The notes below the pieces were generated by a model, which was not told the DNA's origin, searched no databases, and was given only the letters and a program-made list of their open reading frames with translations. DNA of 64,000 nt, from positions 271,036 through 335,035 of IMG/VR virus record IMGVR_UViG_3300028394_002328; one strand, 5' to 3'. The stretch's first letter is position 1, and each line of letters opens with the position of its first letter. Made by a program: the position numbers and the translations under genes. Shown one piece after another: positions 1 to 14,157 of this stretch.

Positions 1-16
1 TCAGGTTACCTTTACA

Positions 17-1054
17 TCATACCCGCGCTTTCAATGTAGCATTTACTCTACGAACACTGTGACTAATACCACAATACTGTGTACACTTTGACATGACATT
101 CCTTAAGTTATCGGTGCCATACCAAAATCTTTTCAAGTCACCGTATCTCTTTATTTTAAACCCAGGGAACTTATGTGAGAAGCATAAACGGGCAATCCCG
201 TCCATATCTACCATAATATTTCTGTCGAAGGAATTACAAATCAATTTTTCAGTACCTCGACCATTCCACCCAATAACCGCATCGTTGTTTTTGTGAACAC
301 TACGATGGTACATCTCAACTGTTTCAATCCATTCAGGATCTAAACTTAGATTATACTTTTCATTACAAGCATTTAGTATTTTAAACAACCCTTCATGATC
401 CCTAATGACATTGTTATCATAAAACTTGTCATCTCGCTGTTTGCCTTCTTTATCTAATAGTGTACCAAACATTGGTTGAAGCCAATTTAATTTTAACTTA
501 TCTGCTTTAAGGTCATTCAATACAAAGTCATAAAACTTATCTAAATCTCTGTAATTTTGCTCGCACATTATAGACATTGCGTATACAGGATTAGATTTGT
601 TTAATTCTTTTCTCGCTTGAAGTAATAGACGAATAGCATTAACAGCCATGTCAAATGATCCTACCATGCCTCTAGTTGAATCATGTACTTCAGGTATGTA
701 ACTGTTTAGTGATATAGTAATCTCAGTTGGACCTTCAACGATTAACTTTTTAGCCATTGACAAATCAGTAACCATTGTACCGTTCATCACTGATAAACAT
801 CTTAGTCCTAATTGGCGACAATATCTAGTAATTGGCCAATATCTTTCAGGATTCATTAATGCTTCACCGCCACATATTACTACTGCACCATGTGGATTTA
901 ATTCATGAAATTCCTGAATAATATTCCCGCGTTCTTCTATAGTGATATGAGTAGGTAATACAACTTCTTCCCTAGTCCAATACATGCAGGTTTTACATTT
1001 TAGATTACATTGTAAGTTAGTATCTAAGAATAGAAATTTTGGCGGGTGATTCAT
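17..1054 (-). CDS. Radical SAM protein with C-terminal SPASM/twitch-like cysteines
   Basis: CxxxCxxC (CNLKCKTC), GGEALM motif, C-terminal C..CF...C..YC. Confidence 0.85.
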   Translation of the reverse strand: MNHPPKFLFLDTNLQCNLKCKTCMYWTREEVVLPTHITIEERGNIIQEFHELNPHGAVVICGGEALMNPERYWPITRYCRQLGLRCLSVMNGTMVTDLSMAKKLIVEGPTEITISLNSYIPEVHDSTRGMVGSFDMAVNAIRLLLQARKELNKSNPVYAMSIMCEQNYRDLDKFYDFVLNDLKADKLKLNWLQPMFGTLLDKEGKQRDDKFYDNNVIRDHEGLFKILNACNEKYNLSLDPEWIETVEMYHRSVHKNNDAVIGWNGRGTEKLICNSFDRNIMVDMDGIARLCFSHKFPGFKIKRYGDLKRFWYGTDNLRNVMSKCTQYCGISHSVRRVNATLKARV

Positions 1055-1062
1055 TAGTCTAT

Positions 1063-1731
1063 TTATGCAGGTTTATGCCCACTACTGTCAGCACCTGTTA
1101 ATATCCAAGATTTTTCATGTCCTATTTGTATTGTAGGATCTCCCCATATAGTATAACCTAATTTTTTTACCCTATGACAAAATCCTGTATCTTCTGATAA
1201 AAAGGTTTCTCTTTCACTATCAGAAAATACTAGAGGTTTGAACCACGGGAATGTCAATGATTCAAATACACCCTTTTGAACACCCATGAATCCCATGCCA
1301 GTTGCTAATAATTCAATTCGCTCGCCATTAACATCGACCTCATTCCTAGGCATCCAATTCATTGTGTTTTTTTCTTTACCTTCAACTGCCTGTGCGTATA
1401 TTTTATTATTATATTGAATATAAAATCCAGTTACAATTTTATGTTCGGGGTTACTAATTAATTTTTCTAAATCTTTAGGTGTCCAAACGCTATCACTATC
1501 AATCCAAACAATCCAATCGTATTTTACTTTTCCATTAAATGGCTTGAAATCTTTAGGAGGATATCCTGTTCCACCTAATAACCAATTACGGCAATTATAA
1601 ATTACAGGTGTATAAGTAGTGCTAACATTAAATGCTATACCTTCTTTGTTTAACCAAGTAACGGTATTAGTCCAACATGTCACCCACGTTCTACTAAATG
1701 ACATTCCAGGAAAACAAAATACTATATTCAT
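1063..1731 (-). CDS. GT-A fold glycosyltransferase-like protein
   Basis: WIDSD (DxD), ATGMGF and SEDTGFC motifs. Confidence 0.65.
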   Translation of the reverse strand: MNIVFCFPGMSFSRTWVTCWTNTVTWLNKEGIAFNVSTTYTPVIYNCRNWLLGGTGYPPKDFKPFNGKVKYDWIVWIDSDSVWTPKDLEKLISNPEHKIVTGFYIQYNNKIYAQAVEGKEKNTMNWMPRNEVDVNGERIELLATGMGFMGVQKGVFESLTFPWFKPLVFSDSERETFLSEDTGFCHRVKKLGYTIWGDPTIQIGHEKSWILTGADSSGHKPA

Positions 1732-1745
1732 AATTATTATTAATT

Positions 1746-1820
1746 TGGTGCCTCGTGACAGGGTCGAACTGCCGACATTCGCCGTGTAAAGGCGCTACTC
1801 TACCACTGAGTTAACGAGGC
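1746..1820 (-). tRNA. tRNA-Val(UAC)
   Basis: Cloverleaf GCCTCGT..., anticodon loop TT TAC AC, encoded CCA. Confidence 0.93.
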
Positions 1821-1830
1821 TTTTTTACTT

Positions 1831-1959
1831 TTAACCTTGACCTCTATATTTTTTAAAACTTCTTTTTTCTGTTTTATTTAGAGTGCTAGTCTTAACCTTT
1901 CCACCTTGACTAGTTCGTTTAACAACCGATTTTGTAGTACCCTCAGATGCCTTAGCCAT
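1831..1959 (-). CDS. Small basic protein, 42 aa, MAKASEGTTKSVVKRTSQGGKVKTSTLNKTEKRSFKKYRGQG (below ORF-track cut-off)
   Basis: Translated by hand; AAGGA Shine-Dalgarno and upstream TAAATA; fills the intergenic gap. Confidence 0.75.
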   Translation of the reverse strand: MAKASEGTTKSVVKRTSQGGKVKTSTLNKTEKRSFKKYRGQG

Positions 1960-2018
1960 ATAATATCCTTTTTAAAAATGTACAGTATTTACTTAGAATA
2001 CAGATACAGAAAAAAATA

Positions 2019-2456
2019 TTAAGCTAGGTATTCGTAATTGACAGTTTCAGTGTTATTTCTGAAAACACTAGCTCCATTTTTTAAATGAAATCTGCGAGCC
2101 ATTTCAGTTGGTGGACTTAGTGTTACAAAACGACTAATATGAGGTTTATTGGATTTAATATAACTAACAGCATTTAAAATTAAATCTCTACCAGCACCTG
2201 GCTTATAACTCCATATAGTATAGAATATAGCCATGTTAGGATTGCTATCATGATTGAACAATTCGCTTTCTGTTGTAGGTATTTGGTCTTGATAACTAAC
2301 ACAAGTAATTGCTTTTACTATGTTATTTTCATCTTTCAATACAAAGATATCTCTATTGTTACCTATTCTTATAGAATGAGGTATATTGGGGCGAACAGGG
2401 TCCTCAGCCAATTTAGTAAACAATTCGTCTTGGTCTGATTTAATCAAGTATAACAT
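2019..2456 (-). CDS. Hypothetical protein, possible GNAT-like fold (start moved to MLYLIK)
   Basis: The listed start overlaps tRNA-Leu; ATG at 2456 follows TAAATA; motifs FYTIWSY..GAG and RFHLKNGA. Confidence 0.6.
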   Translation of the reverse strand: MLYLIKSDQDELFTKLAEDPVRPNIPHSIRIGNNRDIFVLKDENNIVKAITCVSYQDQIPTTESELFNHDSNPNMAIFYTIWSYKPGAGRDLILNAVSYIKSNKPHISRFVTLSPPTEMARRFHLKNGASVFRNNTETVNYEYLA

Positions 2457-2494
2457 ATTGCTATTTATTATATGTAGATATAAAAGATATATTT

Positions 2495-2578
2495 TGGTGC
2501 CCCAGGTCGGACTCGAACCGACACGCATTTCTGCACTGGCTTCTAAGACCAGCATGGCTACCGTTACATCACCGGGGC
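2495..2578 (-). tRNA. tRNA-Leu(UAG)
   Basis: Loop CT TAG AA, long variable arm, CCA. Confidence 0.93.
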
Positions 2579-2587
2579 TAATATAAT

Positions 2588-2661
2588 TGGAGCGGGTAGA
2601 GGGAATCGAACCCTCGTATGCAGCTTGGAAGGCTGCCGTTCTACCATTGAACTACACCCGC
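2588..2661 (-). tRNA. tRNA-Gly(UCC)
   Basis: GCGGGTG acceptor, loop CT TCC AA, CCA. Confidence 0.95.
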
Positions 2662-2666
2662 ACTGT

Positions 2667-2756
2667 TGGTGGAAGCGGTGAGATTCGAACTCACGGACCC
2701 CTTTCAGGGCCTTTAGTTTTCAAGACTAACGCAATCGGCCTCTCTGCCACGCTTCC
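2667..2756 (-). tRNA. tRNA-Ser(UGA)
   Basis: Loop CT TGA AA, long variable arm, CCA. Confidence 0.95.
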
Positions 2757-2760
2757 CTAA

Positions 2761-3016
2761 TAAGGTGCTCTGCATCCCTCGGCGGTAATTATAGCGCATC
2801 AAGCATATGGACCTCAGAACAACAATTAGTTCTTACCACACACCATCACACACGCCCTCCACCCGCTCTCGACAGGGATCGTTATCGCATTGCCAGCGCC
2901 GGTTAGGTTAAACCGCATGTTACCATGTGAAGATATTACTCTTCAGAACCACCCGTACATATCACTGTACTTCATATCCTCTGGGTCAGAGTATCCGTTG
3001 ATTAGACGGAACGTCT
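2761..3016 (-). ncRNA. Candidate structured ncRNA between two tRNA-Ser genes
   Basis: GC-rich spacer with about 8 abutting hairpins; no convincing ORF. Confidence 0.6.
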
Positions 3017-3104
3017 TGGCGGAGAGTATAGGATTCGAACCTATGCACCGATTTCTCAGCGACGGTTTAGCAAACCGTTGTATTAACCACTCTACCAACT
3101 CTCC
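3017..3104 (-). tRNA. tRNA-Ser(GCU)
   Basis: Loop TT GCT AA, long variable arm, CCA. Confidence 0.95.
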
Positions 3105-3109
3105 AATCT

Positions 3110-3187
3110 TGGTGCCTCCGGAGGGACTTGAACCCCCAACCAACGGCTTATGAGGCCGCTGCTACTAACCGATTGAGCTACAGAGGC
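3110..3187 (-). tRNA. tRNA(CAU): Ile2 (lysidine) or elongator Met
   Basis: Loop CT CAT AA; paired 1-72 and no GGG/CCC anticodon stem, so not an initiator. Confidence 0.88.
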
Positions 3188-3194
3188 ATATACT

Positions 3195-3280
3195 TGGTGC
3201 CCGGGGCCGGACTCGAACCGGCACGCCTTGTGAGCGAGAGATTTTAAGTCTCTTGTGTCTACCTATTTCACCACCCGGGC
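3195..3280 (-). tRNA. tRNA-Leu(UAA)
   Basis: Loop CT TAA AA, long variable arm, CCA. Confidence 0.95.
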
Positions 3281-3322
3281 GTTAATTTTTAAAGAACTTC
3301 TAATTTCTCAGTGTATGTATAC

Positions 3323-3351
3323 ATTGTACACGACACCTGCATATTTGTCAA
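3323..3351 (-). promoter_or_regulatory. Sigma70-type promoter for the distal tRNA block
   Basis: TTGACA-17 nt-TACAAT. Confidence 0.8.
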
Positions 3352-3927
3352 TTATTTTAAGAGACTTTCTACCCGATCTAGAACTAGATCCCAATGCTCA
3401 GTAAACCTGTGACCACCGTTCTCCAAGATGGTTGTTGTTGCGTAAGGAAAGCCTTCTAGCATAGATTCATGGGGGATGACCTCATCATCTTTAGCGACAA
3501 ACAAACTCACCAAACTAGGGGAATAGATTTCACGGACATGTTTCCGCATACTATCTAGTTTATCTAAATGTGCTATAGAAACAAGAAATTCTTCACCAGT
3601 ATAATAGTTTTTGTTTGGTCCTAACTTCTCCTTAAGAGTCTCGCTGGGGGTAGAACTAGGATTAACTAACACAGCACAACTGTCATACAAGTGACCGAAA
3701 TAATTTGCGTAAAATGCTCCTAGACTAGTACCAACGAATACCAATTTTTCGTTTGGTTCTCGGGATTTCATAAAGTCACAGACAATACCGTCGACCAACT
3801 CACCCACTAGATCGGGGTCAAAGGGCAGATCGGGTGCGATTACCTTATCGTCACCGAACCGTTTTCTGAGAGCGGTGACCTTATCACTAGTGCCTGAACT
3901 CGCAAAACCATGTAAGTAAACTATCAT
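3352..3927 (-). CDS. YqiA/YcfP-family alpha/beta hydrolase (esterase)
   Basis: YLHGFASSG, GTSLG nucleophile elbow, GGHRF; ATG at 3927. Confidence 0.85.
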   Translation of the reverse strand: MIVYLHGFASSGTSDKVTALRKRFGDDKVIAPDLPFDPDLVGELVDGIVCDFMKSREPNEKLVFVGTSLGAFYANYFGHLYDSCAVLVNPSSTPSETLKEKLGPNKNYYTGEEFLVSIAHLDKLDSMRKHVREIYSPSLVSLFVAKDDEVIPHESMLEGFPYATTTILENGGHRFTEHWDLVLDRVESLLK

Positions 3928-3958
3928 ATTGACGCCCAAAAGTCACTGTCTGAACTAT

Positions 3959-3987
3959 AGTATAGCAAACTATAGAATATTTGTCAA
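3959..3987 (-). promoter_or_regulatory. Sigma70-type promoter
   Basis: TTGACA-17 nt-TATACT. Confidence 0.75.
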
Positions 3988-4613
3988 ATTTTGGATACGA
4001 TATTGTCAGGAAGATGCTTTAAATCAAAGCCTAAATTAGATAATTTTTCTTTACCATTTGGACTTAATTTGACAAATCCAACTATTATCTTTTCATGCGG
4101 TTCGCCCTGAATTAATCTAGTATAATGATATCCATCAGGATTTAAATCTAATATCTTTTTACCAGTTAAAAACTCAGCATATTTATTGTCAATTGGTTTT
4201 GCGCCTGCTTTAAGCATTAATTTTTCAGCAGGTCCGCTTACTTCTGCCCATGCTCTTTTTGTTTTAATGTCATCTTTTTTGAGCATGTTATAATCTTTTA
4301 ATCCTTGTGCAGTGGCTTTATATTCACCTTCAGGATTAAGTTCTGTTTCAGTAGCACTAGCAATCATTTTAAAATTATCCGTATTAGATACTTGTTTATA
4401 AACACCTAATGCAGTTATATGATCACCACGGCGAACTACTTTCCAATAACCTAAATCATTTGCTAATTCTTCAGCACTATTAGCGCTTTTAAAGCCGCCA
4501 ATCTTTTTATAACTACGCTGAAGCATATCCCATATCTTATCCGCATACTTCATTTTTTGTTCAGGAGTATGTAGATTAAGAACCTTTTCAACTAATAATT
4601 GATGATAACGCAT
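3984..4613 (-). CDS. Hypothetical protein
   Basis: 209-aa ORF preceded by TAAATA. Confidence 0.7.
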   Translation of the reverse strand: MRYHQLLVEKVLNLHTPEQKMKYADKIWDMLQRSYKKIGGFKSANSAEELANDLGYWKVVRRGDHITALGVYKQVSNTDNFKMIASATETELNPEGEYKATAQGLKDYNMLKKDDIKTKRAWAEVSGPAEKLMLKAGAKPIDNKYAEFLTGKKILDLNPDGYHYTRLIQGEPHEKIIVGFVKLSPNGKEKLSNLGFDLKHLPDNIVSKI

Positions 4614-4673
4614 CTAGTATTTATGCAATGCGGCAATATCATATCTACAATGGCGTTGTATAAATAACAATAT

Positions 4674-5555
4674 ATGAACAATATTTATTTAGTTACGTTT
4701 CCAGGTGGCGGTGGTGGTGATTTTTTATGCTCTCAAATTTCTAAAGACATTAATTTTTATCCATTAGAATCAAGCATGAATACTGCGACTAATACATGTG
4801 AGTTAGAGAATCCATTTTTAAAATGGAATATTGACCTAAAATCTCATCATAAATTTAAGGTTTTAGAAATTTCTGATGTTATGTTAAAAGAAATAGAATT
4901 ATATTATAATGAAAAAGATTTAGTAGCACCTACTCATTTTTTCGGTAATCTTAGTGAAATTAAATTGCCTAGGCTTAAAGGAGTTCACCTATACACTAAA
5001 CAATTTTTTCCCCTTTTCTATTTGTTATATTGGATAAAAAGATTGTCTGGCCCGAAGCACTTTATAGATAAAGAGACTTTTTTAAGAAAGGTAACAGGTG
5101 CTAGTAGCTTACCCAATGATGCATATGCTAAATTCTTTAGAGATAAAATAGCAGATAATATATTGGCAAATAGAAATTTTGTATATGATTTTGAACTAAT
5201 AGCCGCAACTAGATTACTTGGTAATGCCATAGATTGCATTGAAAGGTTTTATAGATATTATTGTTTTATTTTTTCCTTTCCTAATCCTCACACCGTATCT
5301 AAAGATTGGATTCCATATAATATAGATAATCTCTATCTAGACCCAGTTAATAACTCAAAAGAATTTTGTCAACTGTTCAACATGGAAAAACCAATTAATC
5401 CCGAAATTATTGCATCATATTATTCCAAAAATTTACAGGTAATCGAAGAAACATTTGGCGAACCATATGAAGTTTTTATTCTCGGTGATTGGTTATCAAA
5501 ATTAAAAAAATGGATTGAACTTAAATGTCCAAATTCATATTCAATTAATTTTTAA
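4674..5555 (+). CDS. P-loop/sulfotransferase-like protein, paralog A
   Basis: N-terminal FPGGGGGDFL glycine loop; paralog of next gene. Confidence 0.55.
   Translation: MNNIYLVTFPGGGGGDFLCSQISKDINFYPLESSMNTATNTCELENPFLKWNIDLKSHHKFKVLEISDVMLKEIELYYNEKDLVAPTHFFGNLSEIKLPRLKGVHLYTKQFFPLFYLLYWIKRLSGPKHFIDKETFLRKVTGASSLPNDAYAKFFRDKIADNILANRNFVYDFELIAATRLLGNAIDCIERFYRYYCFIFSFPNPHTVSKDWIPYNIDNLYLDPVNNSKEFCQLFNMEKPINPEIIASYYSKNLQVIEETFGEPYEVFILGDWLSKLKKWIELKCPNSYSINF
5429..5482 (+). repeat. 54-bp exact direct repeat (second copy 6334-6387)
   Basis: aaatttacaggtaatcgaagaaacatttggcgaaccatatgaagtttttattct occurs in both paralogs. Confidence 0.9.
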
Positions 5556-5572
5556 TTTTTATAGGAAAATCA

Positions 5573-6469
5573 ATGAACAATATCTATTTACTTGCATTTA
5601 ATGGCGGATCAGGAGGAGATTTTTTATGCTCTCAAATCTCTAAAGATAGTGATTTTTATCCATTAGAATATAAAATTAATCCTATTACCAATACCTATGA
5701 TTTAGAAAATCCATTTGCAAAATGGAATTTAAATACAAAAAACCAATTCATGCAAGATTTACTAGTTACTACCGACAATACATTAGAAAATATAGATTTA
5801 CATTATAATGAAAAAAATTTAGTAGCACCTATTCATTTTTTTAGTTATTTTAATCAAGCGCATTTAGATACAATATATAGATTACCTAGACTTAAGATAA
5901 TTAGAGTATATAGTAATCAATTAACTCCCCTTTTTTATTTATTACTATGGATAAAAAGATGGGTTCTCATACAAGAGTGTGAAAATAAAGAGATTTTTAT
6001 TAGAGAACAAATTTCAACGTATACCTCTAAATTCGATATAGCTGCTAGAAATAAAATACTTGATAGCATATTTGCTAATAGAAATTATTATTATTCATTT
6101 GAAATTTTAGCCATGTCAAATTTATTTAATAATTCCACGGATTTTGTTAAGAATTTTTTTTTAAAAAAATATAATTATTATAATACCTTCGTTCAAAATA
6201 ACACTGGTAAATGGATTCCATATAATATAGATAATCTCTACTTAGACCCAGTTAATAACTCAGAAGAATTTTGTCAACTTTTAAATATGGAAAAACCAAT
6301 CGATCCCGAAATTATTTCAAACTACTACTTTAGAAATTTACAGGTAATCGAAGAAACATTTGGCGAACCATATGAAGTTTTTATTCTAGGTGATTGGTTA
6401 TCAAAATTAACAGAATGGGTACAAATTCAGTGCCCAAATGCATATTCAGTCGATTTTAAAATTTTGTAA
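5573..6469 (+). CDS. P-loop/sulfotransferase-like protein, paralog B
   Basis: FNGGSGGDFL; C-terminus nearly identical to paralog A. Confidence 0.55.
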   Translation: MNNIYLLAFNGGSGGDFLCSQISKDSDFYPLEYKINPITNTYDLENPFAKWNLNTKNQFMQDLLVTTDNTLENIDLHYNEKNLVAPIHFFSYFNQAHLDTIYRLPRLKIIRVYSNQLTPLFYLLLWIKRWVLIQECENKEIFIREQISTYTSKFDIAARNKILDSIFANRNYYYSFEILAMSNLFNNSTDFVKNFFLKKYNYYNTFVQNNTGKWIPYNIDNLYLDPVNNSEEFCQLLNMEKPIDPEIISNYYFRNLQVIEETFGEPYEVFILGDWLSKLTEWVQIQCPNAYSVDFKIL

Positions 6470-7414
6470 TATAGGAACCCATTGTTCTCTTAGTTGAGTC
6501 ATACTATTTTTAAAACCAGCAGGTGTTAATTCTCTTTCTTCTATAAACATATAATTTTGATCAAAAAACTTTTTGGCTTCAACAGATCGTATTGTACGAG
6601 AAAAGTTTCCCACATACCATTTAACTATGTCCTGATCAGTGCCTTTGGGCAATATGATACCCCAAGCTGCATATACATTCATTCCCGGCACCCATCGATT
6701 CATCAACGGAGCATCAATTCCTACTAAAGGTTTTTCTCCGCATATACTAATGAATTTAATTTTTCCACTAGATAACAATGTAGCGGCTACCGCAGTAGGG
6801 ACAATACCAAACTCAACATGACCTCCGGCAACGTCTTGTGCGGCTTGAGCAGGGCCTTTATATCCCACAGTCTTTACTAATTCACTAACTTTGACCTTTG
6901 TGGACATATATTCAAATGCTAATTTATGAGCACCGCTACCAGCAGCAAAAGTAATAGGTTTGTCAGTATTTTTAATTCTTTCTAATAATTCAGGCACACT
7001 ATTAACGGTGCTACCACTATAAGCAATAATAGCTAGCGGGCTTTTAGCAATAGTAACTACATATTCAAAATCATCTAATGTATATTTTACAGCTGGTTTA
7101 TTGAAGAATTCACTAGTGACCCAAATTCCTTGATGACTAGGCACATAGATATTATAGCCATCTGCGGGTTTTTTGATGAATTCATTCATGGCCACTACAC
7201 CATCTGCACCTGGCTTATTTTCAATAACAAAATTAATTTTAGGATTTAACTTTTCTAATATACTACTAACACCCCTAAAACTAATTTCATTACCCGACCC
7301 AGGTGCAAACCCTACAAGAACATTTATTGGTTTTGTAGGCTCCCAAGCATATGCTGATACCGACAAACAAGTTAATACAATTATTTTAACAATGTTACTA
7401 AAACATCTGACCAT
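6446..7414 (-). CDS. Bug/TctC tripartite tricarboxylate transporter substrate-binding protein
   Basis: Signal peptide, PTKPINVLVGFAPGSG, ENKPGADG, AGSGAH, YKGPAQAAQDVAGGHV. Confidence 0.9.
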   Translation of the reverse strand: MVRCFSNIVKIIVLTCLSVSAYAWEPTKPINVLVGFAPGSGNEISFRGVSSILEKLNPKINFVIENKPGADGVVAMNEFIKKPADGYNIYVPSHQGIWVTSEFFNKPAVKYTLDDFEYVVTIAKSPLAIIAYSGSTVNSVPELLERIKNTDKPITFAAGSGAHKLAFEYMSTKVKVSELVKTVGYKGPAQAAQDVAGGHVEFGIVPTAVAATLLSSGKIKFISICGEKPLVGIDAPLMNRWVPGMNVYAAWGIILPKGTDQDIVKWYVGNFSRTIRSVEAKKFFDQNYMFIEERELTPAGFKNSMTQLREQWVPILQNFKID

Positions 7415-7971
7415 TTGTTTTTTATCTCTATAGTTTGATTAAAGTTATATTCAATCCAACTTGTTGTAAAATAATTCCAAGTTAGATTATGTTTATATGC
7501 AAATTCTAATATATGAGAATTCTGATTACTTATCTCCCCTAACATATTGGTACTATTTTTATACCAAGTGTAATCGGGATATTTAATATTAAATCCACCT
7601 GCTTCATGCCACCAAGCATAACTAGACATGTCTGGTCTATAAATTAACATTATCCAATCATTAGGAAAAAATGTTTTTACGTCATCTAAGATATATGCCC
7701 AATTATGACTTTTGATTAGCCTTGTACCATCTAAACTCGACCATGCTTGATCTATATACTCAGCATCAAGTATTGCATCGAATTCCATGTGTCGCCCAAA
7801 GTATGCACCCTTATGTCCACTAAATCCATTATGACTATATTCTCTCTCAGAGGTGCGATCACTAATATTAAATCCATCAAGACTTTCAATAGTCTGCGCT
7901 ATTCCGCTCCACCGACTTCCAGGCACACCAGTAAAAAATATTCTTTTAGGAAGTTCTATGCCATTCTGCAT
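7381..7971 (-). CDS. Sulfotransferase-like/P-loop hypothetical protein
   Basis: FFTGVPGSRWS, LIKSH and LIYR motifs. Confidence 0.45.
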   Translation of the reverse strand: MQNGIELPKRIFFTGVPGSRWSGIAQTIESLDGFNISDRTSEREYSHNGFSGHKGAYFGRHMEFDAILDAEYIDQAWSSLDGTRLIKSHNWAYILDDVKTFFPNDWIMLIYRPDMSSYAWWHEAGGFNIKYPDYTWYKNSTNMLGEISNQNSHILEFAYKHNLTWNYFTTSWIEYNFNQTIEIKNKWSDVLVTLLK

Positions 7972-8479
7972 ACAATCTAGGCCTTGTTAAATGTTCATCT
8001 ATTTTTTCTACTGTTTGAACATAATTGTGCTTTTTGGCAAATACATTTAATTTATCAAATGTCCATGGGAAAAAAGGAATATCTAAACACTGTTTATTAT
8101 CGTGGTCACGACGACCTGGATTTAATCTCCAATATATTCTTGATGAAGGAGTTAAACAACTTACTACTTTTTCAATTTGGCGTTCAATGATTTCACTAGT
8201 GCCGAAATTAATACTACCTAAGCAAGTAGCAACATCAAACAACCTATTTGGTTCATATTCTTCTATGGTACATTTATAGTCAGCCTGAGCAAACGCAGGA
8301 TCTATACCTATAACATTTTTTACTAAGGACTTAAAAGGATTAGCCCCACATCCTACATCTAACAACCATTCATCATCATTGATGAAAGTTGATATTCTTG
8401 CAGGGCTAGTCAATCCTCTTGAGTCACCTGATACCCAATGTTTAGAAAAATATTCATTTAAAAATTTTTGATTATGCAT
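7946..8479 (-). CDS. SAM-dependent methyltransferase
   Basis: LLDVGCG motif I, IGIDP motif II. Confidence 0.8.
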   Translation of the reverse strand: MHNQKFLNEYFSKHWVSGDSRGLTSPARISTFINDDEWLLDVGCGANPFKSLVKNVIGIDPAFAQADYKCTIEEYEPNRLFDVATCLGSINFGTSEIIERQIEKVVSCLTPSSRIYWRLNPGRRDHDNKQCLDIPFFPWTFDKLNVFAKKHNYVQTVEKIDEHLTRPRLYAEWHRTS

Positions 8480-8541
8480 TTAATCATTTACCGCGATTAG
8501 AAAAATATTTATTATTTTATCTATACGCGGAAAATATTATT

Positions 8542-8606
8542 TGGAAGTGCGGGTGGGGTTCGCACCCACTGCAATCCGTTCTATTGGACTACGTTGGCAC
8601 CGCACT
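8542..8606 (-). ncRNA. D-armless tRNA-like element ending in CCA
   Basis: Acceptor AGTGCGG/CCGCACT-T-CCA; T arm GTGGG-TGCGAAC-CCCAC; 8-nt loop stem; no D arm. Confidence 0.6.
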
Positions 8607-8611
8607 ATATT

Positions 8612-8636
8612 TGGCGCACCGTAGGGGACTTGAACC
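8612..8636 (-). pseudogene. tRNA 3' remnant
   Basis: GGTTCAAGTCCCCTACGGTGCGCCA with no matching 5' half. Confidence 0.6.
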
Positions 8637-8649
8637 ATCATGCATGATT

Positions 8650-8724
8650 TGGCGGTCCCAAGGGGTAACGATCCCCTTCTTTCAGCGTGACAGGCTGATG
8701 TGCGTCCATGAACACTTTGAGACC
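8650..8724 (-). tRNA. tRNA-Asp(GUC), atypical T loop ATCGTTA
   Basis: Loop CT GTC AC; acceptor GGTCTCA/TGGGACC; CCA. Confidence 0.88.
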
Positions 8725-9152
8725 TAACTCAATCTACTGCCAATGGGCATTCTACCATTACGAATGTCATTGCCCAACTTAGCAGCCTCTTTAATTCTTT
8801 GTTTGCCCTCGTCGCTAGCATTCTTGACACCCCAAGTTTCAGTTTGAGTATGACAATTAGGACAAAGATAACGATAATTTTCTAGTCTATCGTTTTTGTT
8901 GTTTCCGTCAATGTGGTCAATCTGAAGTCGTATCGGCTTGCCGTTATATTCAGATATACCACATTCAGTACATTTGTACTCGGTGAATCTTCTAAAATAT
9001 GAAAGTGCGTTTGACTTAGTGTAAATACCACTTTCAATCTTTTCTTTTAATACATGTTGTATACCACATTCATTACAGCAATATTTGCCCTTACTTTGAG
9101 AGGGGTGCCACATAAATTTGGTATCGCAGTTTAAGCAGTTCTTTTTCGGCAT
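8724..9152 (-). CDS. HNH endonuclease with Zn-finger motifs
   Basis: LQIDHIDGNNKNDRLENYRYLCPNCH; several CxxC. Confidence 0.9.
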   Translation of the reverse strand: MPKKNCLNCDTKFMWHPSQSKGKYCCNECGIQHVLKEKIESGIYTKSNALSYFRRFTEYKCTECGISEYNGKPIRLQIDHIDGNNKNDRLENYRYLCPNCHTQTETWGVKNASDEGKQRIKEAAKLGNDIRNGRMPIGSRLS

Positions 9153-9281
9153 AGGTTAGTCCTTTGATAAAGTATTTATCACTCTAACCTAGAAATTGCG
9201 CTAACGGTGCATATACTGACAGGCTTTACACCTGATTGGACATTTGCTAGCGCACTCAGTCTAATGTCTAAATCATCAACT

Positions 9282-9355
9282 TGGCAGGGGTATAGGGATT
9301 CGAACCCCAACGAACGGAATCAAAATCCGGTATGCTACCATTACATCATACCCCA
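9282..9355 (-). tRNA. tRNA-Gln(UUG)
   Basis: Loop TT TTG AT, CCA. Confidence 0.92.
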
Positions 9356-9362
9356 ATTGTCT

Positions 9363-9439
9363 TGGTGGGTCCACCCGGACTCGAACCGGGAACTCTCAGA
9401 TTAAAAGTCTGATACTCTGACCAATTGAGTTATGGACCC
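9363..9439 (-). tRNA. tRNA-Lys(UUU)
   Basis: Loop CT TTT AA, CCA. Confidence 0.95.
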
Positions 9440-9446
9440 GAAAACT

Positions 9447-9522
9447 TGGCTCCCCGGGGTAGGATCGAACTACCGACACCCTGATTAACAGTCAGGTGCA
9501 ACTACCGCTGTGCTACCGAGGA
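9447..9522 (-). tRNA. tRNA-Asn(GUU), copy 1
   Basis: Loop CT GTT AA, CCA. Confidence 0.93.
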
Positions 9523-9528
9523 ATAAAC

Positions 9529-9735
9529 TTACAACTCTACACGCTCACGAAAATAAGAGTCCCAACCCTCTTCAGGGGGAGCTCCTATTACACGAGTTTC
9601 AACAAAAAATCGATAATCTCCAAAAGTTACAGTGTATTCACGGGCGGCGTCAACTGCCTGTGAACGTGATTCATAGACACCAAGAACTTCTGTCCCTTCA
9701 GGACCTTCATCAGTGACTAGAACATATACTTGCAT
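9529..9735 (-). CDS. Small hypothetical protein
   Basis: 68-aa ORF with AAGGA Shine-Dalgarno, downstream of a consensus promoter. Confidence 0.7.
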   Translation of the reverse strand: MQVYVLVTDEGPEGTEVLGVYESRSQAVDAAREYTVTFGDYRFFVETRVIGAPPEEGWDSYFRERVEL

Positions 9736-9776
9736 GATAGTTCCTTTTCTGTTCGTTTTTTCTCACTACAGAAACT

Positions 9777-9805
9777 ATTATACATACCTACCGATTAATT
9801 GTCAA
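9777..9805 (-). promoter_or_regulatory. Perfect sigma70 consensus promoter
   Basis: TTGACA-17 nt-TATAAT. Confidence 0.88.
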
Positions 9806-9843
9806 ACGCTTGTTGCTAGTTGTTTTTTAGCAACAGTGATATT

Positions 9844-9919
9844 TGGTGCCTCCACTTGGACTTGAACCAAGGACTTCCACCTTATCAAGGTGATACTCTA
9901 CCAACTGAGTTATAGAGGC
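9844..9919 (-). tRNA. tRNA-Ile(GAU)
   Basis: Loop TT GAT AA, CCA. Confidence 0.93.
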
Positions 9920-9923
9920 AATT

Positions 9924-10001
9924 TGGTCGGGGATGCAGGATTCGAACCTGCGACCTTCTGCTCCCAAAGCAGACCGTCTAACCGGACTGACGTAATCCCC
10001 G
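9924..10001 (-). tRNA. tRNA-Pro(UGG)
   Basis: CGGGGAT acceptor, loop TT TGG GA, CCA. Confidence 0.93.
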
Positions 10002-10008
10002 AATTCTA

Positions 10009-10082
10009 TGGCTCCGGTGGATGGAATCGAACCACCACTAGCGGTTTTGGAGACCGCCGCACTGCCATTATACTACACCGGA
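10009..10082 (-). tRNA. tRNA-Trp(CCA)
   Basis: Loop CT CCA AA, CCA end. Confidence 0.93.
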
Positions 10083-10088
10083 ATTGTT

Positions 10089-10174
10089 TGGTGGAGTGTA
10101 CTGGGATCGAACCAGTCGTGCCATAAAGACGGCGGATTTACAGTCCACTGCATCACCATTGATGCTTCCACTCC
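10089..10174 (-). tRNA. tRNA-Tyr(GUA)
   Basis: Loop CT GTA AA, long variable arm, CCA. Confidence 0.93.
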
Positions 10175-10240
10175 ATATTGAAACACACTTTTTAGTTCTT
10201 TCGACCTCTCCGCGTTCGGTAAAGGTAATGTGTTTTAATA

Positions 10241-10316
10241 TGGCGCGACTGGAGAGATTCGAACTCCCGACAGACCGGGTAGAAGCCGGATACTCTATCC
10301 ACTGAGTTACAGTCGC
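10241..10316 (-). tRNA. tRNA-Arg(UCU)
   Basis: Loop CT TCT AC, CCA. Confidence 0.93.
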
Positions 10317-10320
10317 AATA

Positions 10321-10396
10321 TGGCTCCTCGACCTGGGCTCGAACCAGGGACCAACGGATTAACAGTCCGGCACTCTACCAACTGAGCTATCGAGGA
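10321..10396 (-). tRNA. tRNA-Asn(GUU), copy 2
   Basis: Loop CT GTT AA, CCA. Confidence 0.95.
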
Positions 10397-11205
10397 AAAA
10401 ATTTTGTAAATGTGTTATTTAATAACGTTGTATTTAAACCTCTAAAACTTAAATATTCTATCAAGAAAGATAAACTATTATTATTTTCTTTAATACGCAA
10501 ATTTCTATGTATTCCTAAAACAAAACTGTTTTCATATATCTTTTCTAAGACTTTTTCTGTAGGCAATGAAGTTCGGTAATTCATAAACAACTTATTCATG
10601 CCGCTACTACAATGTAGTAATTCTGAATTAGGTAAAAACATATTATATAATGCAAACTCACTTGGCAATTCATCCTCAAAAAATAATGACGTATAATCAG
10701 TACAAATTATAGAATTGACTATAGATGTATTCATCTTATAAGGAGTCATGTAGTCAATATGAAGTTTTGGAATTTCTTTCTTATATTTTTTAGAAGTTTT
10801 TTCTAAAAAAACATCTACATCCATTCGTTTTTTGTTACCTTTATAATAAATGAACAAAGATCCATTACCGTGAGGTACATTCCAATCAGTAAGAGTGAAT
10901 GGCTTTATAAAAAAATTCTTACTATCTAATATCAAATAATTTTCAGTATTAATTTTTTTAGCAATTTCTAATTTTAGAATTTGCTGTTGCCGCCAGCCAG
11001 ATTGTAATACCAAATCATTTTGTATTAGTACTAATTTATGTCTAGTATAATACGGCGACAATGCCGATTGCCATTCACTTAATTCAATTTTAGTATCCTG
11101 AATTATAACGAAATGAGTTACATTGTCTATTACAAATTCCAAACTTGATGCTTGCAATAACATTGCATCAAAATCGGTACTAAAGGTAACAGTAACAAAA
11201 TTCAT
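10387..11205 (-). CDS. Nucleotide-sugar transferase-like protein (DUF6492-like)
   Basis: GWRQQQILKL and YLILDSKNFF motifs. Confidence 0.55.
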   Translation of the reverse strand: MNFVTVTFSTDFDAMLLQASSLEFVIDNVTHFVIIQDTKIELSEWQSALSPYYTRHKLVLIQNDLVLQSGWRQQQILKLEIAKKINTENYLILDSKNFFIKPFTLTDWNVPHGNGSLFIYYKGNKKRMDVDVFLEKTSKKYKKEIPKLHIDYMTPYKMNTSIVNSIICTDYTSLFFEDELPSEFALYNMFLPNSELLHCSSGMNKLFMNYRTSLPTEKVLEKIYENSFVLGIHRNLRIKENNNSLSFLIEYLSFRGLNTTLLNNTFTKFFPR

Positions 11206-11236
11206 ATTTAAATTACTGTCAGTAACGAGGGGCTAT

Positions 11237-11440
11237 CTATTTCATCAAAACCATTACTTTTTCAAAAGTTTCCTCAACTTCCCATGTACCGTGGGGAGGA
11301 GCAAACACAAAAGTAACTTCTTCTGATGTTCCATCTTCACGCAAGATAGTGCTTCTATGTACCGTTGCAATCAAATCTTTTCTAATTGCGACTTTTTTCC
11401 CTTTATGTGCGGGGTTAGCGTTGGTGAGTTTAATAAACAT
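11237..11440 (-). CDS. Small protein, possibly FlbD-like
   Basis: MFIKLT... start and V.ET..KV end resemble the FlbD pattern (weak). Confidence 0.4.
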   Translation of the reverse strand: MFIKLTNANPAHKGKKVAIRKDLIATVHRSTILREDGTSEEVTFVFAPPHGTWEVEETFEKVMVLMK

Positions 11441-11462
11441 TGTATTTTCTTTTAAAGTAAAT

Positions 11463-11538
11463 TGGTGCCCCCTGACGGATTCGAACCGCCGACCTACTGA
11501 TTACAAATCAGTTGCGCTACCAGCTGTGCCAAGAGGGC
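11463..11538 (-). tRNA. tRNA-Thr(UGU)
   Basis: Loop TT TGT AA, CCA. Confidence 0.95.
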
Positions 11539-11562
11539 GTGTTAATATTTAATTAGTATACA

Positions 11563-12123
11563 CTAACTCAATAAAATTCTACTATGTTTTGGTAATCCTG
11601 CTCTTAAATAATCCATCTGATCAGCCAAAATATTACGATTTTGTAATATCATATTTTCAAAATGGTTTGGCACATATGGAACATATAGTAGTTCCATTCT
11701 TGCCTCTTTAAGAGTTTTACACCCTTTCATAGCGTTACAATCTTTACATGCGGTAACTACATTCATCCATACATTTTCCCCACCTTTGCTTTTGGGGATA
11801 ATATGGTCTCTGCTTAGGCTGTTAACATTGGGAAAATAATCACCACAATATGCACAGATATGTCTATCTCTACCAAACAATGTTCTATTGCCTAGTGCTA
11901 CTTTACTATGCTTAGTTGGATTAAATCCATGTCCTTTGATAGCAATAATTGATTGAGTTTCAATGTAACTTAGTTCGCCATTGCGTTGAATTCCACCACG
12001 ATATTTAGCCACAATTTCACCCATAGTCCATGCAACACTTTTGGTTGCATGGTAAAGAATTGCGTTATCATATGAAATCCACTGTCGGGGCGTTCCCGAT
12101 ATATCCAGTGCTAAAACTGACAT
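11563..12123 (-). CDS. HNH endonuclease (McrA-like)
   Basis: RDRHICAYCG...DHIIPKSKGG..W.NVVTACKDCN..KG. Confidence 0.9.
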   Translation of the reverse strand: MSVLALDISGTPRQWISYDNAILYHATKSVAWTMGEIVAKYRGGIQRNGELSYIETQSIIAIKGHGFNPTKHSKVALGNRTLFGRDRHICAYCGDYFPNVNSLSRDHIIPKSKGGENVWMNVVTACKDCNAMKGCKTLKEARMELLYVPYVPNHFENMILQNRNILADQMDYLRAGLPKHSRILLS

Positions 12124-12227
12124 TAAAAACTCCTTGTTACTAACTATTTACAGTATGATCAATTTGGTAGAAATATCTATATGATACGTACCGCATTATA
12201 CTAAATATATCTACGCTATAGAATCCA

Positions 12228-12416
12228 TTAGCGCATACTATCAAGTTTACTTTCTGGTATTTTTTTAAGAGAATCTTTGCGAACCAAACAATCTCTTTGA
12301 GTACCATATTTAAACACACGCAAATATTCAATGCCATCAATCAACCTAATGTCGTTAGGGTTCTTGCATGAATATTTTTCTTTATTAACTAAATTTTCAA
12401 AATATGTTGTTTTCAT
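12228..12416 (-). CDS. Small hypothetical protein
   Basis: AAGGAG Shine-Dalgarno, 62 aa. Confidence 0.7.
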   Translation of the reverse strand: MKTTYFENLVNKEKYSCKNPNDIRLIDGIEYLRVFKYGTQRDCLVRKDSLKKIPESKLDSMR

Positions 12417-12420
12417 GATT

Positions 12421-12620
12421 ACTCCTTAATATGAACACTCTGGGGCCTCGCCTTACCAGGGCAAGCCTATGTCCGTCCCAAAGTGTGTAGTAAAACATAC
12501 TACATGTAATATGCTTTACTACTCGGTATTTTTCAAGCCACATTAGGCTTTTCATCCACCGCGCCGCCCGTTTCTCCGATTTATAGTGCGGAGTAGGTCC
12601 TCGTTACCTTACACTGTCTT
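12421..12620 (-). ncRNA. Candidate structured leader RNA/sRNA
   Basis: About 200-nt untranslated, multi-hairpin segment directly after a sigma70 promoter. Confidence 0.6.
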
Positions 12621-12623
12621 TCA

Positions 12624-12652
12624 ATTGTATCTCAATCTTCCTTTTCTGTCAA
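12624..12652 (-). promoter_or_regulatory. Sigma70-type promoter heading the tRNA array
   Basis: TTGACA-17 nt-TACAAT. Confidence 0.82.
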
Positions 12653-12656
12653 CCAT

Positions 12657-12683
12657 AAAAAAACCTCGGAATATTCCGAGGTT
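12657..12683 (-). terminator. Intrinsic terminator (attenuator)
   Basis: AACCTCGGA-ATAT-TCCGAGGTT followed by a T run. Confidence 0.88.
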
Positions 12684-12706
12684 CTGATAATTCGTATGTT
12701 TACTTG

Positions 12707-12802
12707 TTATCCAAACCTCGGAGTAGCCCTTCTATCAGATGTGGGATAGGCTGTCTCCAATGACCATGATTTAATATAGGTTGATAAGAAACAAGTTTTC
12801 AT
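12707..12802 (-). CDS. Putative leader peptide MKTCFLSTYIKSWSLETAYPTSDRRATPRFG (31 aa)
   Basis: Translated by hand; ATG 5 nt after TAAATA; last codons contain an exact copy of the terminator 3' arm. Confidence 0.65.
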   Translation of the reverse strand: MKTCFLSTYIKSWSLETAYPTSDRRATPRFG

Positions 12803-12836
12803 AAAGCTATTTATCCCTAATTATTATTTTAAATAA

Positions 12837-13439
12837 TTACCAACTAGCTAATACACAATATCTAGTATATACTTCTAATGGTAATGTCCAATCATCTTCT
12901 ATTTTAAATCCACGAGATACTAATTCTTTTATCAAAGGCTCGGTACTAGTAACAGTATTAATATGAGTATCTATTTGAAAATCTGTACTTTGTAAATAAA
13001 CATATCCTGATTCATACTTTTTAAAGTTTAACCAATCATAATTCATATGCTCACATGAGGTATTAACTATCAAGGTATTGTTCTTAATATTATCTTCCCA
13101 AGTATTACATTGCGTTGCATCGGCAATTATTGATTTAAAATCCCAATCATAGTTTAATTTTCTACTGAAATTAGCCCAAAAATGATCTAGTTCAATTCCT
13201 ATAGCACTTTTGATAATATCATGTTCATGTAACATATGGGGCAGCATACCATGCCACTGCCCCATAAAGATACAATAATAATCAGTTAAATTAGATAGGT
13301 GTTTAACCGCGCCAATCTTACTATGCAATTGTGAGTAAGTTAACCCATGTCTTAGATGCCTATGTGTGGCTTCATCAACATTTAAACCCCATTCACTAAC
13401 TTGCATGAGTCTCCCAATTGAATTGGCTAGTTTTTCCAT
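12837..13439 (-). CDS. Methyltransferase-like protein
   Basis: FMGQWHG glycine loop, IELD, IVNTSCEH. Confidence 0.6.
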   Translation of the reverse strand: MEKLANSIGRLMQVSEWGLNVDEATHRHLRHGLTYSQLHSKIGAVKHLSNLTDYYCIFMGQWHGMLPHMLHEHDIIKSAIGIELDHFWANFSRKLNYDWDFKSIIADATQCNTWEDNIKNNTLIVNTSCEHMNYDWLNFKKYESGYVYLQSTDFQIDTHINTVTSTEPLIKELVSRGFKIEDDWTLPLEVYTRYCVLASW

Positions 13440-13485
13440 ATACTATATTTAATATATGAGCTAGGTTTAATAATATAAATATTGT

Positions 13486-14157
13486 ATGCCAAAAATAAAT
13501 TATTTTTTAGATTCATACAAATATTTTTGCCAATTAAACCAAGATCCAATCACAGGTTCCGTATTAGACTATGGCTGTAACTATGGAATGTTTTTAGAAA
13601 GTAGCAGAAGTTTATTCTCTGAAAACATGTATACTGGTATAGATGTAGACTTAGAGGCATTGCAAGCTGGTAAGAAAATGTTTCCAAATGCAAAATTTAT
13701 TCATTATGACAAACATAATTTTATGTACAACCCAACCGGGTCTAGAAGCCTTTGGCCTGACATTAATGAACAATTTGATTGTATTATAAGTTATAGTGTC
13801 ATAACACATACCACAAAAGAAGACATGTTAGATGCTATTGCCTGGCTCTATACTAAGTTGAAATCAGATAAAAAAATGTTTATTACTTGGTTAGATCAAG
13901 AAAATAAAATAGCATTAGCTTACTTTTATCAAAAACGTATGAAAGATTTTGGTAGTTGTGATAGGATTCAAACAGAAGATTACGTTTATCTCATTGACAA
14001 TAAAACATCCAAAGTACCCAATGATGGGATGTTTTTAGCTTTTTACAAAAAAGAATATTTGGCTAGCTTGTTGTCCGATTATGATTTTTCTTTAGAGCAA
14101 TCACCTGATTTTACTAATAGATGTTTTCAAGACTGTATAATTATAAAGAAAATATAA
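13486..14157 (+). CDS. SAM-dependent methyltransferase
   Basis: VLDYGCNYG, YTGIDVD, FDCIISYSVITH. Confidence 0.85.
   Translation: MPKINYFLDSYKYFCQLNQDPITGSVLDYGCNYGMFLESSRSLFSENMYTGIDVDLEALQAGKKMFPNAKFIHYDKHNFMYNPTGSRSLWPDINEQFDCIISYSVITHTTKEDMLDAIAWLYTKLKSDKKMFITWLDQENKIALAYFYQKRMKDFGSCDRIQTEDYVYLIDNKTSKVPNDGMFLAFYKKEYLASLLSDYDFSLEQSPDFTNRCFQDCIIIKKI

Follow-up and report, generated by a model that had tools for sequence, protein, structure and literature searches.

Structured RNAs associated with phage transcription units and phage tRNA genes have been described in several forms. The put RNAs of phage HK022 (putL and putR) are cis-acting processive antiterminators of about 70 nt, comprising two stem-loops in a V shape and an RNA triplex; they lie just downstream of an early promoter, suppress downstream terminators in cis by binding RNA polymerase, and their antitermination activity persists on terminators at least 10 kb away (PMC9378689). 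GOLLD and ROOL are structured RNAs of unknown function found in phages and metagenomes in association with tRNA genes or arrays (PMC12286853), and theta (HDV-like) ribozymes of uncultured phages cleave within 5 nt of a tRNA 3’ end (PMC10879173). The tRNA cluster of phage T4 encodes the stable species 1 and 2 RNAs (rnaC, rnaD), non-tRNA species of unknown function that lie inside or at the end of the cluster and mature from the same precursor. Outside phages, the E. coli thrS operator carries a tRNA-Thr anticodon-arm mimic that controls the ribosome-binding site of the cognate synthetase gene. Phage tRNA arrays are common and are now linked to codon supply and to escape from tRNA-cleaving host defenses, yet how such long untranslated arrays are expressed is largely unexplored. 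Here we describe a pseudoknotted RNA of about 190 nt that matches no Rfam 15 family and that, in at least 80 contigs of uncultured, mostly freshwater, phages (about 4.6 to 383 kb), sits at the upstream end of a long tRNA gene array in nearly all loci.

The RNA compares differently with each of these systems. Like put, it is a phage-encoded structured RNA that, in the clade studied most closely here, is promoter-proximal at the head of a long transcription unit, but at 190-300 nt, with a 5’-terminal pseudoknot and five or more helices, it has a different architecture and no sequence similarity. It shares with GOLLD and ROOL the association with phage tRNA genes, and variable peripheral helices around a conserved core; however, Rfam models for both give no hit, it is far smaller than either, and it occupies a strict position at the upstream end of the array, on the same strand. 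Theta ribozymes follow a tRNA, whereas this RNA precedes the array: only 7 of 66 loci have a same-strand tRNA within 1.5 kb upstream, none of which abuts the RNA, and there is no HDV-type fold. No significant match was found in cultured relatives of the phage, as detailed below.

A structured RNA behind a sigma70 promoter

The window, the whole 64-kb stretch analyzed here, is the end of a 335-kb jumbo-phage IMG/VR record rated 95% complete, whose major capsid protein is about 63-67% identical to those of cultured jumbo phages. All 17-18 tRNA genes of the window lie on the minus strand between 1746 and 11538, and the element must be read on that strand as well. There, an intrinsic terminator closing the upstream unit (12685-12660; an 11-bp stem followed by a U run) is followed by a promoter, TTGACA (12652-12647), 17 nt, TACAAT (12629-12624), matching 11 of 12 consensus positions. 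Its -10 ends 8 nt before the pseudoknot tail, placing the predicted start at about 12617-12618. Next come the GC-rich RNA (12617-12431) and, 4 nt beyond its end, the Shine-Dalgarno AAGGAG (12427-12422) and ATG (12416-12414) of a 62-aa ORF (12228-12416), which has no PHROG or Pfam hit; an HNH endonuclease gene (12123-11563, identified by a PHROG hit) and tRNA-Thr follow. The predicted fold has an MFE of -68 kcal/mol (z = -4.0), with 0 of 200 shuffles folding as well, and GC content is 42-46% against about 30% in the flanks. An overlapping 52-aa ORF (12397-12555) is not coding, as close relatives carry 1-2-nt and 13-nt indels inside it.

The observation made in the sequence-only reading, that a structured RNA of about 200 nt follows a sigma70 promoter at the start of the tRNA operon, holds. 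Every hairpin it listed is present: P1 (12574-12593, CUCCG/CGGAG), P2a (12535-12550), P3 (12487-12522, 16-17 bp) and P4 (12435-12444 with 12477-12486) around an inner hairpin, P4a (12447-12465). It missed three features, namely the P0 hairpin (12595-12609, AGGU/ACCU, with loop AACGAGG at 12599-12605), helix P2 (12558-12561 with 12524-12527, CGGU/ACCG), and a pseudoknot between AGUG (12615-12612) of the 5’ tail AGUG(U) (12611-12615) and CACU (12588-12585) in the P1 loop, which reads GCACUAUAAAU. P1 and P2 are separated by the single-stranded junction AAACGGGCGG (12564-12573). P2 (12524-12561) contains the conserved internal loops GGAUGA and GAAAAAU and encloses P2a (12536-12549). P4 (12435-12486) is a 10-bp helix (ACACUUUGGG/CCCAGAGUGU) with a clade-specific insertion that includes P4a. 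The window’s copy is a somewhat derived member of its family, with a short linker between tail and P0, its own version of the P1 loop, a plain P3 hairpin and an enlarged P4.

A previously uncatalogued RNA family with extensive covariation

The 62-aa ORF has relatives in 16 IMG/VR loci, but only the 7 closest also keep the RNA; in the others the ORF follows a tRNA directly. A 15-nt pattern from the P0 hairpin recovered much more divergent copies among 26 IMG/VR stretches, and a 20-base gapped pattern from the P1 loop and junction hit 93 viral stretches with 78 distinct cores. The same gapped pattern hit only 3 MAG contigs among 185,579 prokaryotic species genomes, which we presume to be mis-binned phage contigs; a differently spaced pattern, AAACGGGCGGNNNNNGTGGAT, gave 17 hits (L024-L040; L numbers denote fetched loci) that are chance matches and were left out. 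A covariance model of the core (R1, 131 positions) finds 83 matches in the fetched loci at 76-142 bits, plus one weak second hit in L110 (23 bits, E = 7e-4). The window scores 94 bits (12501-12625, E = 3.5e-26, although E-values from R1 are rough), and its 335-kb genome holds a single copy.

No Rfam 15 family (4227 models) describes this RNA. Only tRNAs pass the gathering score in the window, and nothing plausible appears at E <= 10 on 12350-12750, at E <= 1 on 1-14000, or at E <= 1 on three typical members (L079, L046 and L043). Searches by blastn with 700 nt of the window and with a typical member found nothing in 50,697 cultured-phage records, and four cultured relatives by major capsid protein (Pseudomonas PA5oct, Vibrio 2.275.O, E. 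coli A4 and Sinorhizobium Phosso) have no significant R1 hit (best E-value 0.27). Literature searches likewise turned up no description of the RNA, leaving aside the unnamed entries of the 10,006-candidate viral RNA catalogue of Fremin et al. (PMC10690425).

From 5’ to 3’, family members comprise a tail, [A/C]GUG(U); P0, 5 bp, with the invariant 7-nt loop AACGAGG; P1, 4-5 bp, with the loop GCAC[U/G]UAAAACAU (typically GCACUUAAAACAU); a junction, RAACGGGCGG (AACGGGCGG); P2, with internal loops that read GGAUGA and GAAAAAU in most members, and P2a; P3, a long hairpin with a conserved base and a tip that varies up to about 150 nt; P4, in most members a plain 8-bp hairpin with a 4-nt loop, commonly GAAA or GCAA, and sometimes large insertions; and a short A/U-rich linker. 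The part through P2, about 130 nt, forms the conserved core, while P3 and P4 make up a variable 3’ part. Conservation of GCAC-TAAAACAT and ACGGGCGG is partly imposed by the search pattern; however, the window’s clade, in which ACGGGCGG is invariant, and the P0-pattern hits were found independently and show the same motifs with small variations.

All seven helices (the pseudoknot, P0, P1, P2, P2a, P3 and P4) are backed by compensatory changes, so that absence of conserved structure in homologs, which had been named beforehand as grounds for rejecting the element, is decisively ruled out. On the model-based alignment of the core, 92.2% of cells form pairs against 66.9% in shuffles, 524 cells show changes on both sides against 151, and the covariation score is 0.600 against 0.163 in shuffles and at most 0.124 when partners are slid by 1-3 columns. 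That alignment was fitted to the model, which favors the structure, but an independent MAFFT alignment shows the same compensations. Helix 2 (P0) is 95.8% paired with 4 of its 5 pairs changing on both sides, helix 3 (P1) is 98.3% paired with all 5 pairs doing so, and helix 5 (P2) is 96.5% paired with all 5 pairs covarying. The diagnostic pseudoknot pair is A-U in 72 sequences, C-G in 9 and other (unpaired) in 1, and every CGUGUG tail goes with a GCACGU loop. P3 and P4, checked separately, also show compensatory changes: in 42 distinct type-A members all ten positions at the base of P3 are paired, with compensatory changes at eight of the ten (at position 3, for example, U-A 32, G-C 7, A-U 2). 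Two such events are visible within the window’s own clade, a C-G to A-U change in P1 of L013 and L014 and a G-C to A-U change in P2 of L013.

Position at the head of tRNA arrays

Across 81 loci, 1011 same-strand tRNA genes lie downstream of the RNA (286 kb examined), 33 upstream (418 kb) and none on the opposite strand. All 70 loci with at least 600 nt of downstream sequence have tRNAs there, 62 of them within 600 nt, and arrays hold 15-37 tRNAs; upstream, 59 of 66 loci have no tRNA within 1.5 kb. In most members the next gene is a tRNA rather than an ORF, in many cases 4-13 nt after P4. The first tRNA is most often tRNA-Tyr(GUA), called by ARAGORN in 24 of 59 cases, with about a dozen more being odd tRNA-Tyr-like genes that ARAGORN misses.

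Upstream context is more varied. The window’s promoter recurs at the same distance in all 7 members of its clade, and L135 has a comparable one (TTGACA-18-TAGAAT) just upstream, giving 8 of 81 loci against 2.2 +/- 1.5 in shuffles; a promoter is not evident in most other members. In 31 of 81 loci a conserved ORF of about 65 aa, without a Pfam hit and without a relative in the window’s genome, ends 1-70 nt before the RNA, in many cases placing the RNA directly behind its stop codon. At least 12 loci instead have another conserved structured element plus an intrinsic terminator 10-30 nt before the RNA, with no recognizable promoter between. Fourteen of 73 members carry a strong sigma70 promoter after the core, against 3.7 +/- 1.9 in shuffles; in nine of these (TTGACA-17-TAnAAT) it is placed so that transcription would start just before the first tRNA. 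The window’s own array has further strong promoters at 9805-9777, 3987-3959 and 3351-3323.

DNA metagenomes from lakes contain the sequence, and four metatranscriptome runs, examined as Logan contigs rather than raw reads, contain 5-9% of its sampled words. The matches were mostly tRNA-Thr look-alikes from other organisms, and the only RNA-library contig over the region (X20, 256 nt, 12526-12780) also spans the terminator and promoter, and is therefore uninformative on RNA ends or abundance.

Candidate functions of the RNA

What the comparative evidence establishes is a real, widespread and previously uncatalogued structured RNA family that marks the head of phage tRNA arrays and is not specific to the small ORF of this window; what the RNA does, including any antitermination, ligand binding, self-cleavage or action in trans, is inferred. 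The interpretation offered in the sequence-only reading, a cis-regulator or sRNA unlike any riboswitch known to its author, is thus supported only in part: the RNA is genuine and has no Rfam counterpart, whereas a role tied to the small gene is not supported.

We tentatively favor a cis-acting leader. The RNA would be transcribed first, from the sigma70 promoter in the window (predicted start 1-3 nt before the pseudoknot tail) or behind the stop codon of a small ORF in many relatives, which is where ribosome-coupled transcription would stop and the transcript would become exposed to Rho. It may then act on the polymerase that made it, or against Rho, allowing transcription to continue through kilobases of untranslated, hairpin-rich tRNA genes, functionally like put RNA or the rrn leader, before RNase P cleavage at the first downstream tRNA separates it from the array. 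In this view, a 62-aa ORF and an HNH homing-endonuclease gene have been inserted between the RNA and the tRNAs in the window’s clade, so that the RNA here also forms the 5’ UTR of that ORF. The strict upstream, same-strand position points to such a leader, although this rests on position and analogy, without data on transcript ends or termination. Polymerases starting at the promoters between core and first tRNA in nine members would never transcribe the RNA, which argues against an obligatory cis role; the further promoters inside the window’s array, the terminators immediately upstream in at least 12 members, and the dissimilarity to put architecture also weigh against it. Furthermore, the many invariant unpaired nucleotides would fit a ligand- or protein-binding RNA, or a ribozyme, equally well. 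A resemblance of GUGCUUUAAUAC and UUACAA to rrn boxA is weak and absent from the window’s own copy.

Nearly as likely, though equally tentative, is a stable trans-acting RNA, possibly the RNA part of a ribonucleoprotein or a decoy, merely co-expressed with the array and released by RNase P cutting at the 5’ end of the next tRNA, in the manner of the T4 species 1 and 2 RNAs or of GOLLD and ROOL next to phage tRNAs. The ornate fold, with invariant unpaired nucleotides and variable peripheral helices, agrees with this reading, as do the separate tRNA promoters in some members, the persistence of the RNA where an ORF and an HNH gene separate it from the tRNAs (in the window’s clade and in L135), and the ready-made processing site offered by a tRNA shortly after P4. 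Perhaps the small upstream ORF encodes a protein partner, but it is absent from the window’s genome. A trans-acting RNA could sit anywhere in or outside an array, yet this one is at the upstream end in nearly all loci and never on the other strand; expression data to support a discrete species are lacking.

A riboswitch-like sensor or attenuator, in which the pseudoknotted core binds a small molecule, a tRNA or a protein and decides whether transcription proceeds into the array, is unlikely but not excluded. As in many aptamers, the core combines covarying helices, an H-type pseudoknot, an A-rich loop and invariant purine-rich unpaired segments (AACGAGG, AACGGGCGG), and it consistently lies upstream of what it would regulate. 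However, there is no recognizable expression platform, since P4 is an A/U- and G-U-rich 8-bp hairpin followed by UUACAA and not by a U run, and there is no covarying alternative pairing. A conformational switch between the tail and the similar P4 3’ strand is not supported, as the A/C to U/G covariation is specific to tail and P1 loop; L075, for example, has a CGUG tail and a GCACG loop, but its P4 3’ strand stays AGUGU. Rfam riboswitch models give no hit, nor do those for T-box leaders, which have a stem I with a specifier loop plus the T-box antiterminator sequence and lie upstream of aminoacyl-tRNA synthetase or amino-acid genes whereas the downstream genes here are tRNAs, and no riboswitch is known to control tRNA genes.

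Comparably unlikely is a new class of self-cleaving ribozyme that would cut at its own 5’ edge and so separate upstream mRNA from tRNA precursor. Conservation starts sharply about 3 nt before the tail whether a stop codon, a terminator or a promoter lies upstream, the 5’-terminal nucleotides are locked into a pseudoknot as in ribozymes that cleave at their 5’ end, and phage tRNA genes are already known to be flanked by theta ribozymes (PMC10879173). On the other hand, the window’s clade, where the predicted transcription start coincides with the 5’ edge, still keeps the whole core, suggesting that the RNA probably does more than make that end; moreover, no Rfam ribozyme model shows similarity, and RNase P would free the tRNAs anyway.

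It remains possible, though less likely than not, that the family is a new class of cis-acting RNA that reprograms the host transcription machinery, by processive antitermination or Rho antagonism, so that phages can express arrays of 15-37 tRNA genes as long untranslated transcripts, or alternatively a new ribozyme class at the mRNA-tRNA precursor boundary; either would constitute an undescribed RNA-based control layer for phage tRNA arrays, and an antiterminator, ribozyme or ligand sensor would add a new class to a short list. Regardless of function, a conserved RNA at the head of these arrays is a concrete handle on their expression, and its abundant covariation, about 130 conserved core positions and invariant loops make it a good target for biochemistry and structure determination.

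A translational leader of the 62-aa ORF is very unlikely. The RNA does end 4 nt before AAGGAG, and RNAalifold pairs ACUCC with the GGAGU of the Shine-Dalgarno, the only such sequestration it proposes (CUCC with GGAG); however, this pairing is broken in two of the 7 close relatives (L013 and L014), in which the competing P1 helix is kept by its compensatory change, and in distant relatives the same ORF follows a tRNA directly, without this RNA. Mimicry of a tRNA-Thr anticodon arm by P4a, as in the thrS operator, was initially attractive because its 7-nt loop, CUGGUAA in the window and UUUGUAA in L014, reads as a Thr anticodon (GGU, UGU) with U33 and A37 in place, but two variants are weak evidence. 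The downstream gene is not thrS, L013 has lost P4a through a 13-nt deletion, and the other members, which mostly have no ORF downstream, lack it; we therefore treat it as a clade-specific curiosity.

The speculation that the RNA is one half of a split RNA whose partner lies at 2761-3016, with the tRNAs processed out between them, is not supported and close to refuted, as that element was found in only 4 of the fetched arrays although most loci extend kilobases downstream, its longest complementarity to the head RNA is 8 nt (E = 0.58), and the head RNA folds completely on its own. The element (2757-3016) is itself conserved, lying downstream of the head RNA in L054, L062, L075 and L127.

Additional elements within the tRNA array

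A second conserved non-coding element sits inside the tRNA array, at 2757-3016 on the minus strand of the window, directly after tRNA-Ser(GCU). Homologs of this element are present in four of the IMG/VR viral loci compared here, namely L054 (8331-8609), L062 (3302-3539), L075 (73-307, minus strand) and L127 (1809-2043). Its hairpins visibly covary, and a TGCGCTATAAT-like -10 lies near its 3' end; however, its own fold z-score is only -1.3, and no Rfam hit was obtained. Further near-consensus sigma70 promoters, matching 11-12 of 12 positions, lie within the tRNA region at 9805-9777, 3987-3959 and 3351-3323 (minus strand), and the window's array is therefore probably several transcription units.

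Two observations concern tRNA-Tyr or tRNA-Tyr-like genes that are missed by ARAGORN. In the window, the tRNA gene at 10092-10174 (minus strand) is detected only by the Rfam model (34 bits); its anticodon loop, CUGUAAA, reads as Tyr (GUA), and it corresponds to the tRNA-Tyr of relatives such as L013 (4602-4687). In L105, L095, L078, L079, L119 and other loci, an unusual tRNA-Tyr-like gene that ARAGORN does not call is found directly after the head RNA, the structured RNA at the upstream end of the arrays. This gene appears to lack a D arm, but has a covarying 7-bp acceptor stem, a long composite anticodon arm with loop CUGUAAC, a normal T arm and CCA.

Sequences downstream of the head RNA

The 62-aa ORF at 12228-12416 (minus strand) of the window is itself a conserved resident of phage tRNA arrays, found in 16 loci (L008-L023) at 65-100% identity, and has no family assignment; in distant relatives it is directly preceded by a tRNA. 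At about 12221-12241, the window lacks the tRNA-Arg(UCG) gene that lies between this small ORF and the HNH gene in L009, L010 and L013. There, 87 nt are replaced by 21 nt in the window, which also changes the C-terminus of the ORF. Related HNH endonuclease genes (MSVLALD...) are inserted right behind the RNA in two separate lineages, at 11563-12123 in the window and after the P4 hairpin in L135, which suggests homing-endonuclease traffic at the head of the arrays. In L113, the P3-P4 module is duplicated in tandem downstream of the core.

Sequences upstream of the head RNA

In L095 (2623-2820, minus strand) and 30 other loci, a conserved ORF of about 65 aa (...KEQLQKLIQDKFERARVYHEAL...) ends 1-70 nt before the RNA. 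It has no Pfam hit and no relative in the window's genome; it is possible that it encodes a protein partner of the RNA, or it may simply be syntenic. In L063, L104, L115, L059, L080, L124, L121, L110, L141, L143, L090, L120, another conserved structured element (GGGUCC..GGAGGAC..hairpin..GGACCC) lies upstream of the RNA, where it is fused to a strong terminator and ends 10-30 nt before the head RNA. Farther upstream, a permuted tmRNA gene is called by ARAGORN in L095 (8548-8982, minus strand), about 6 kb from the head RNA.
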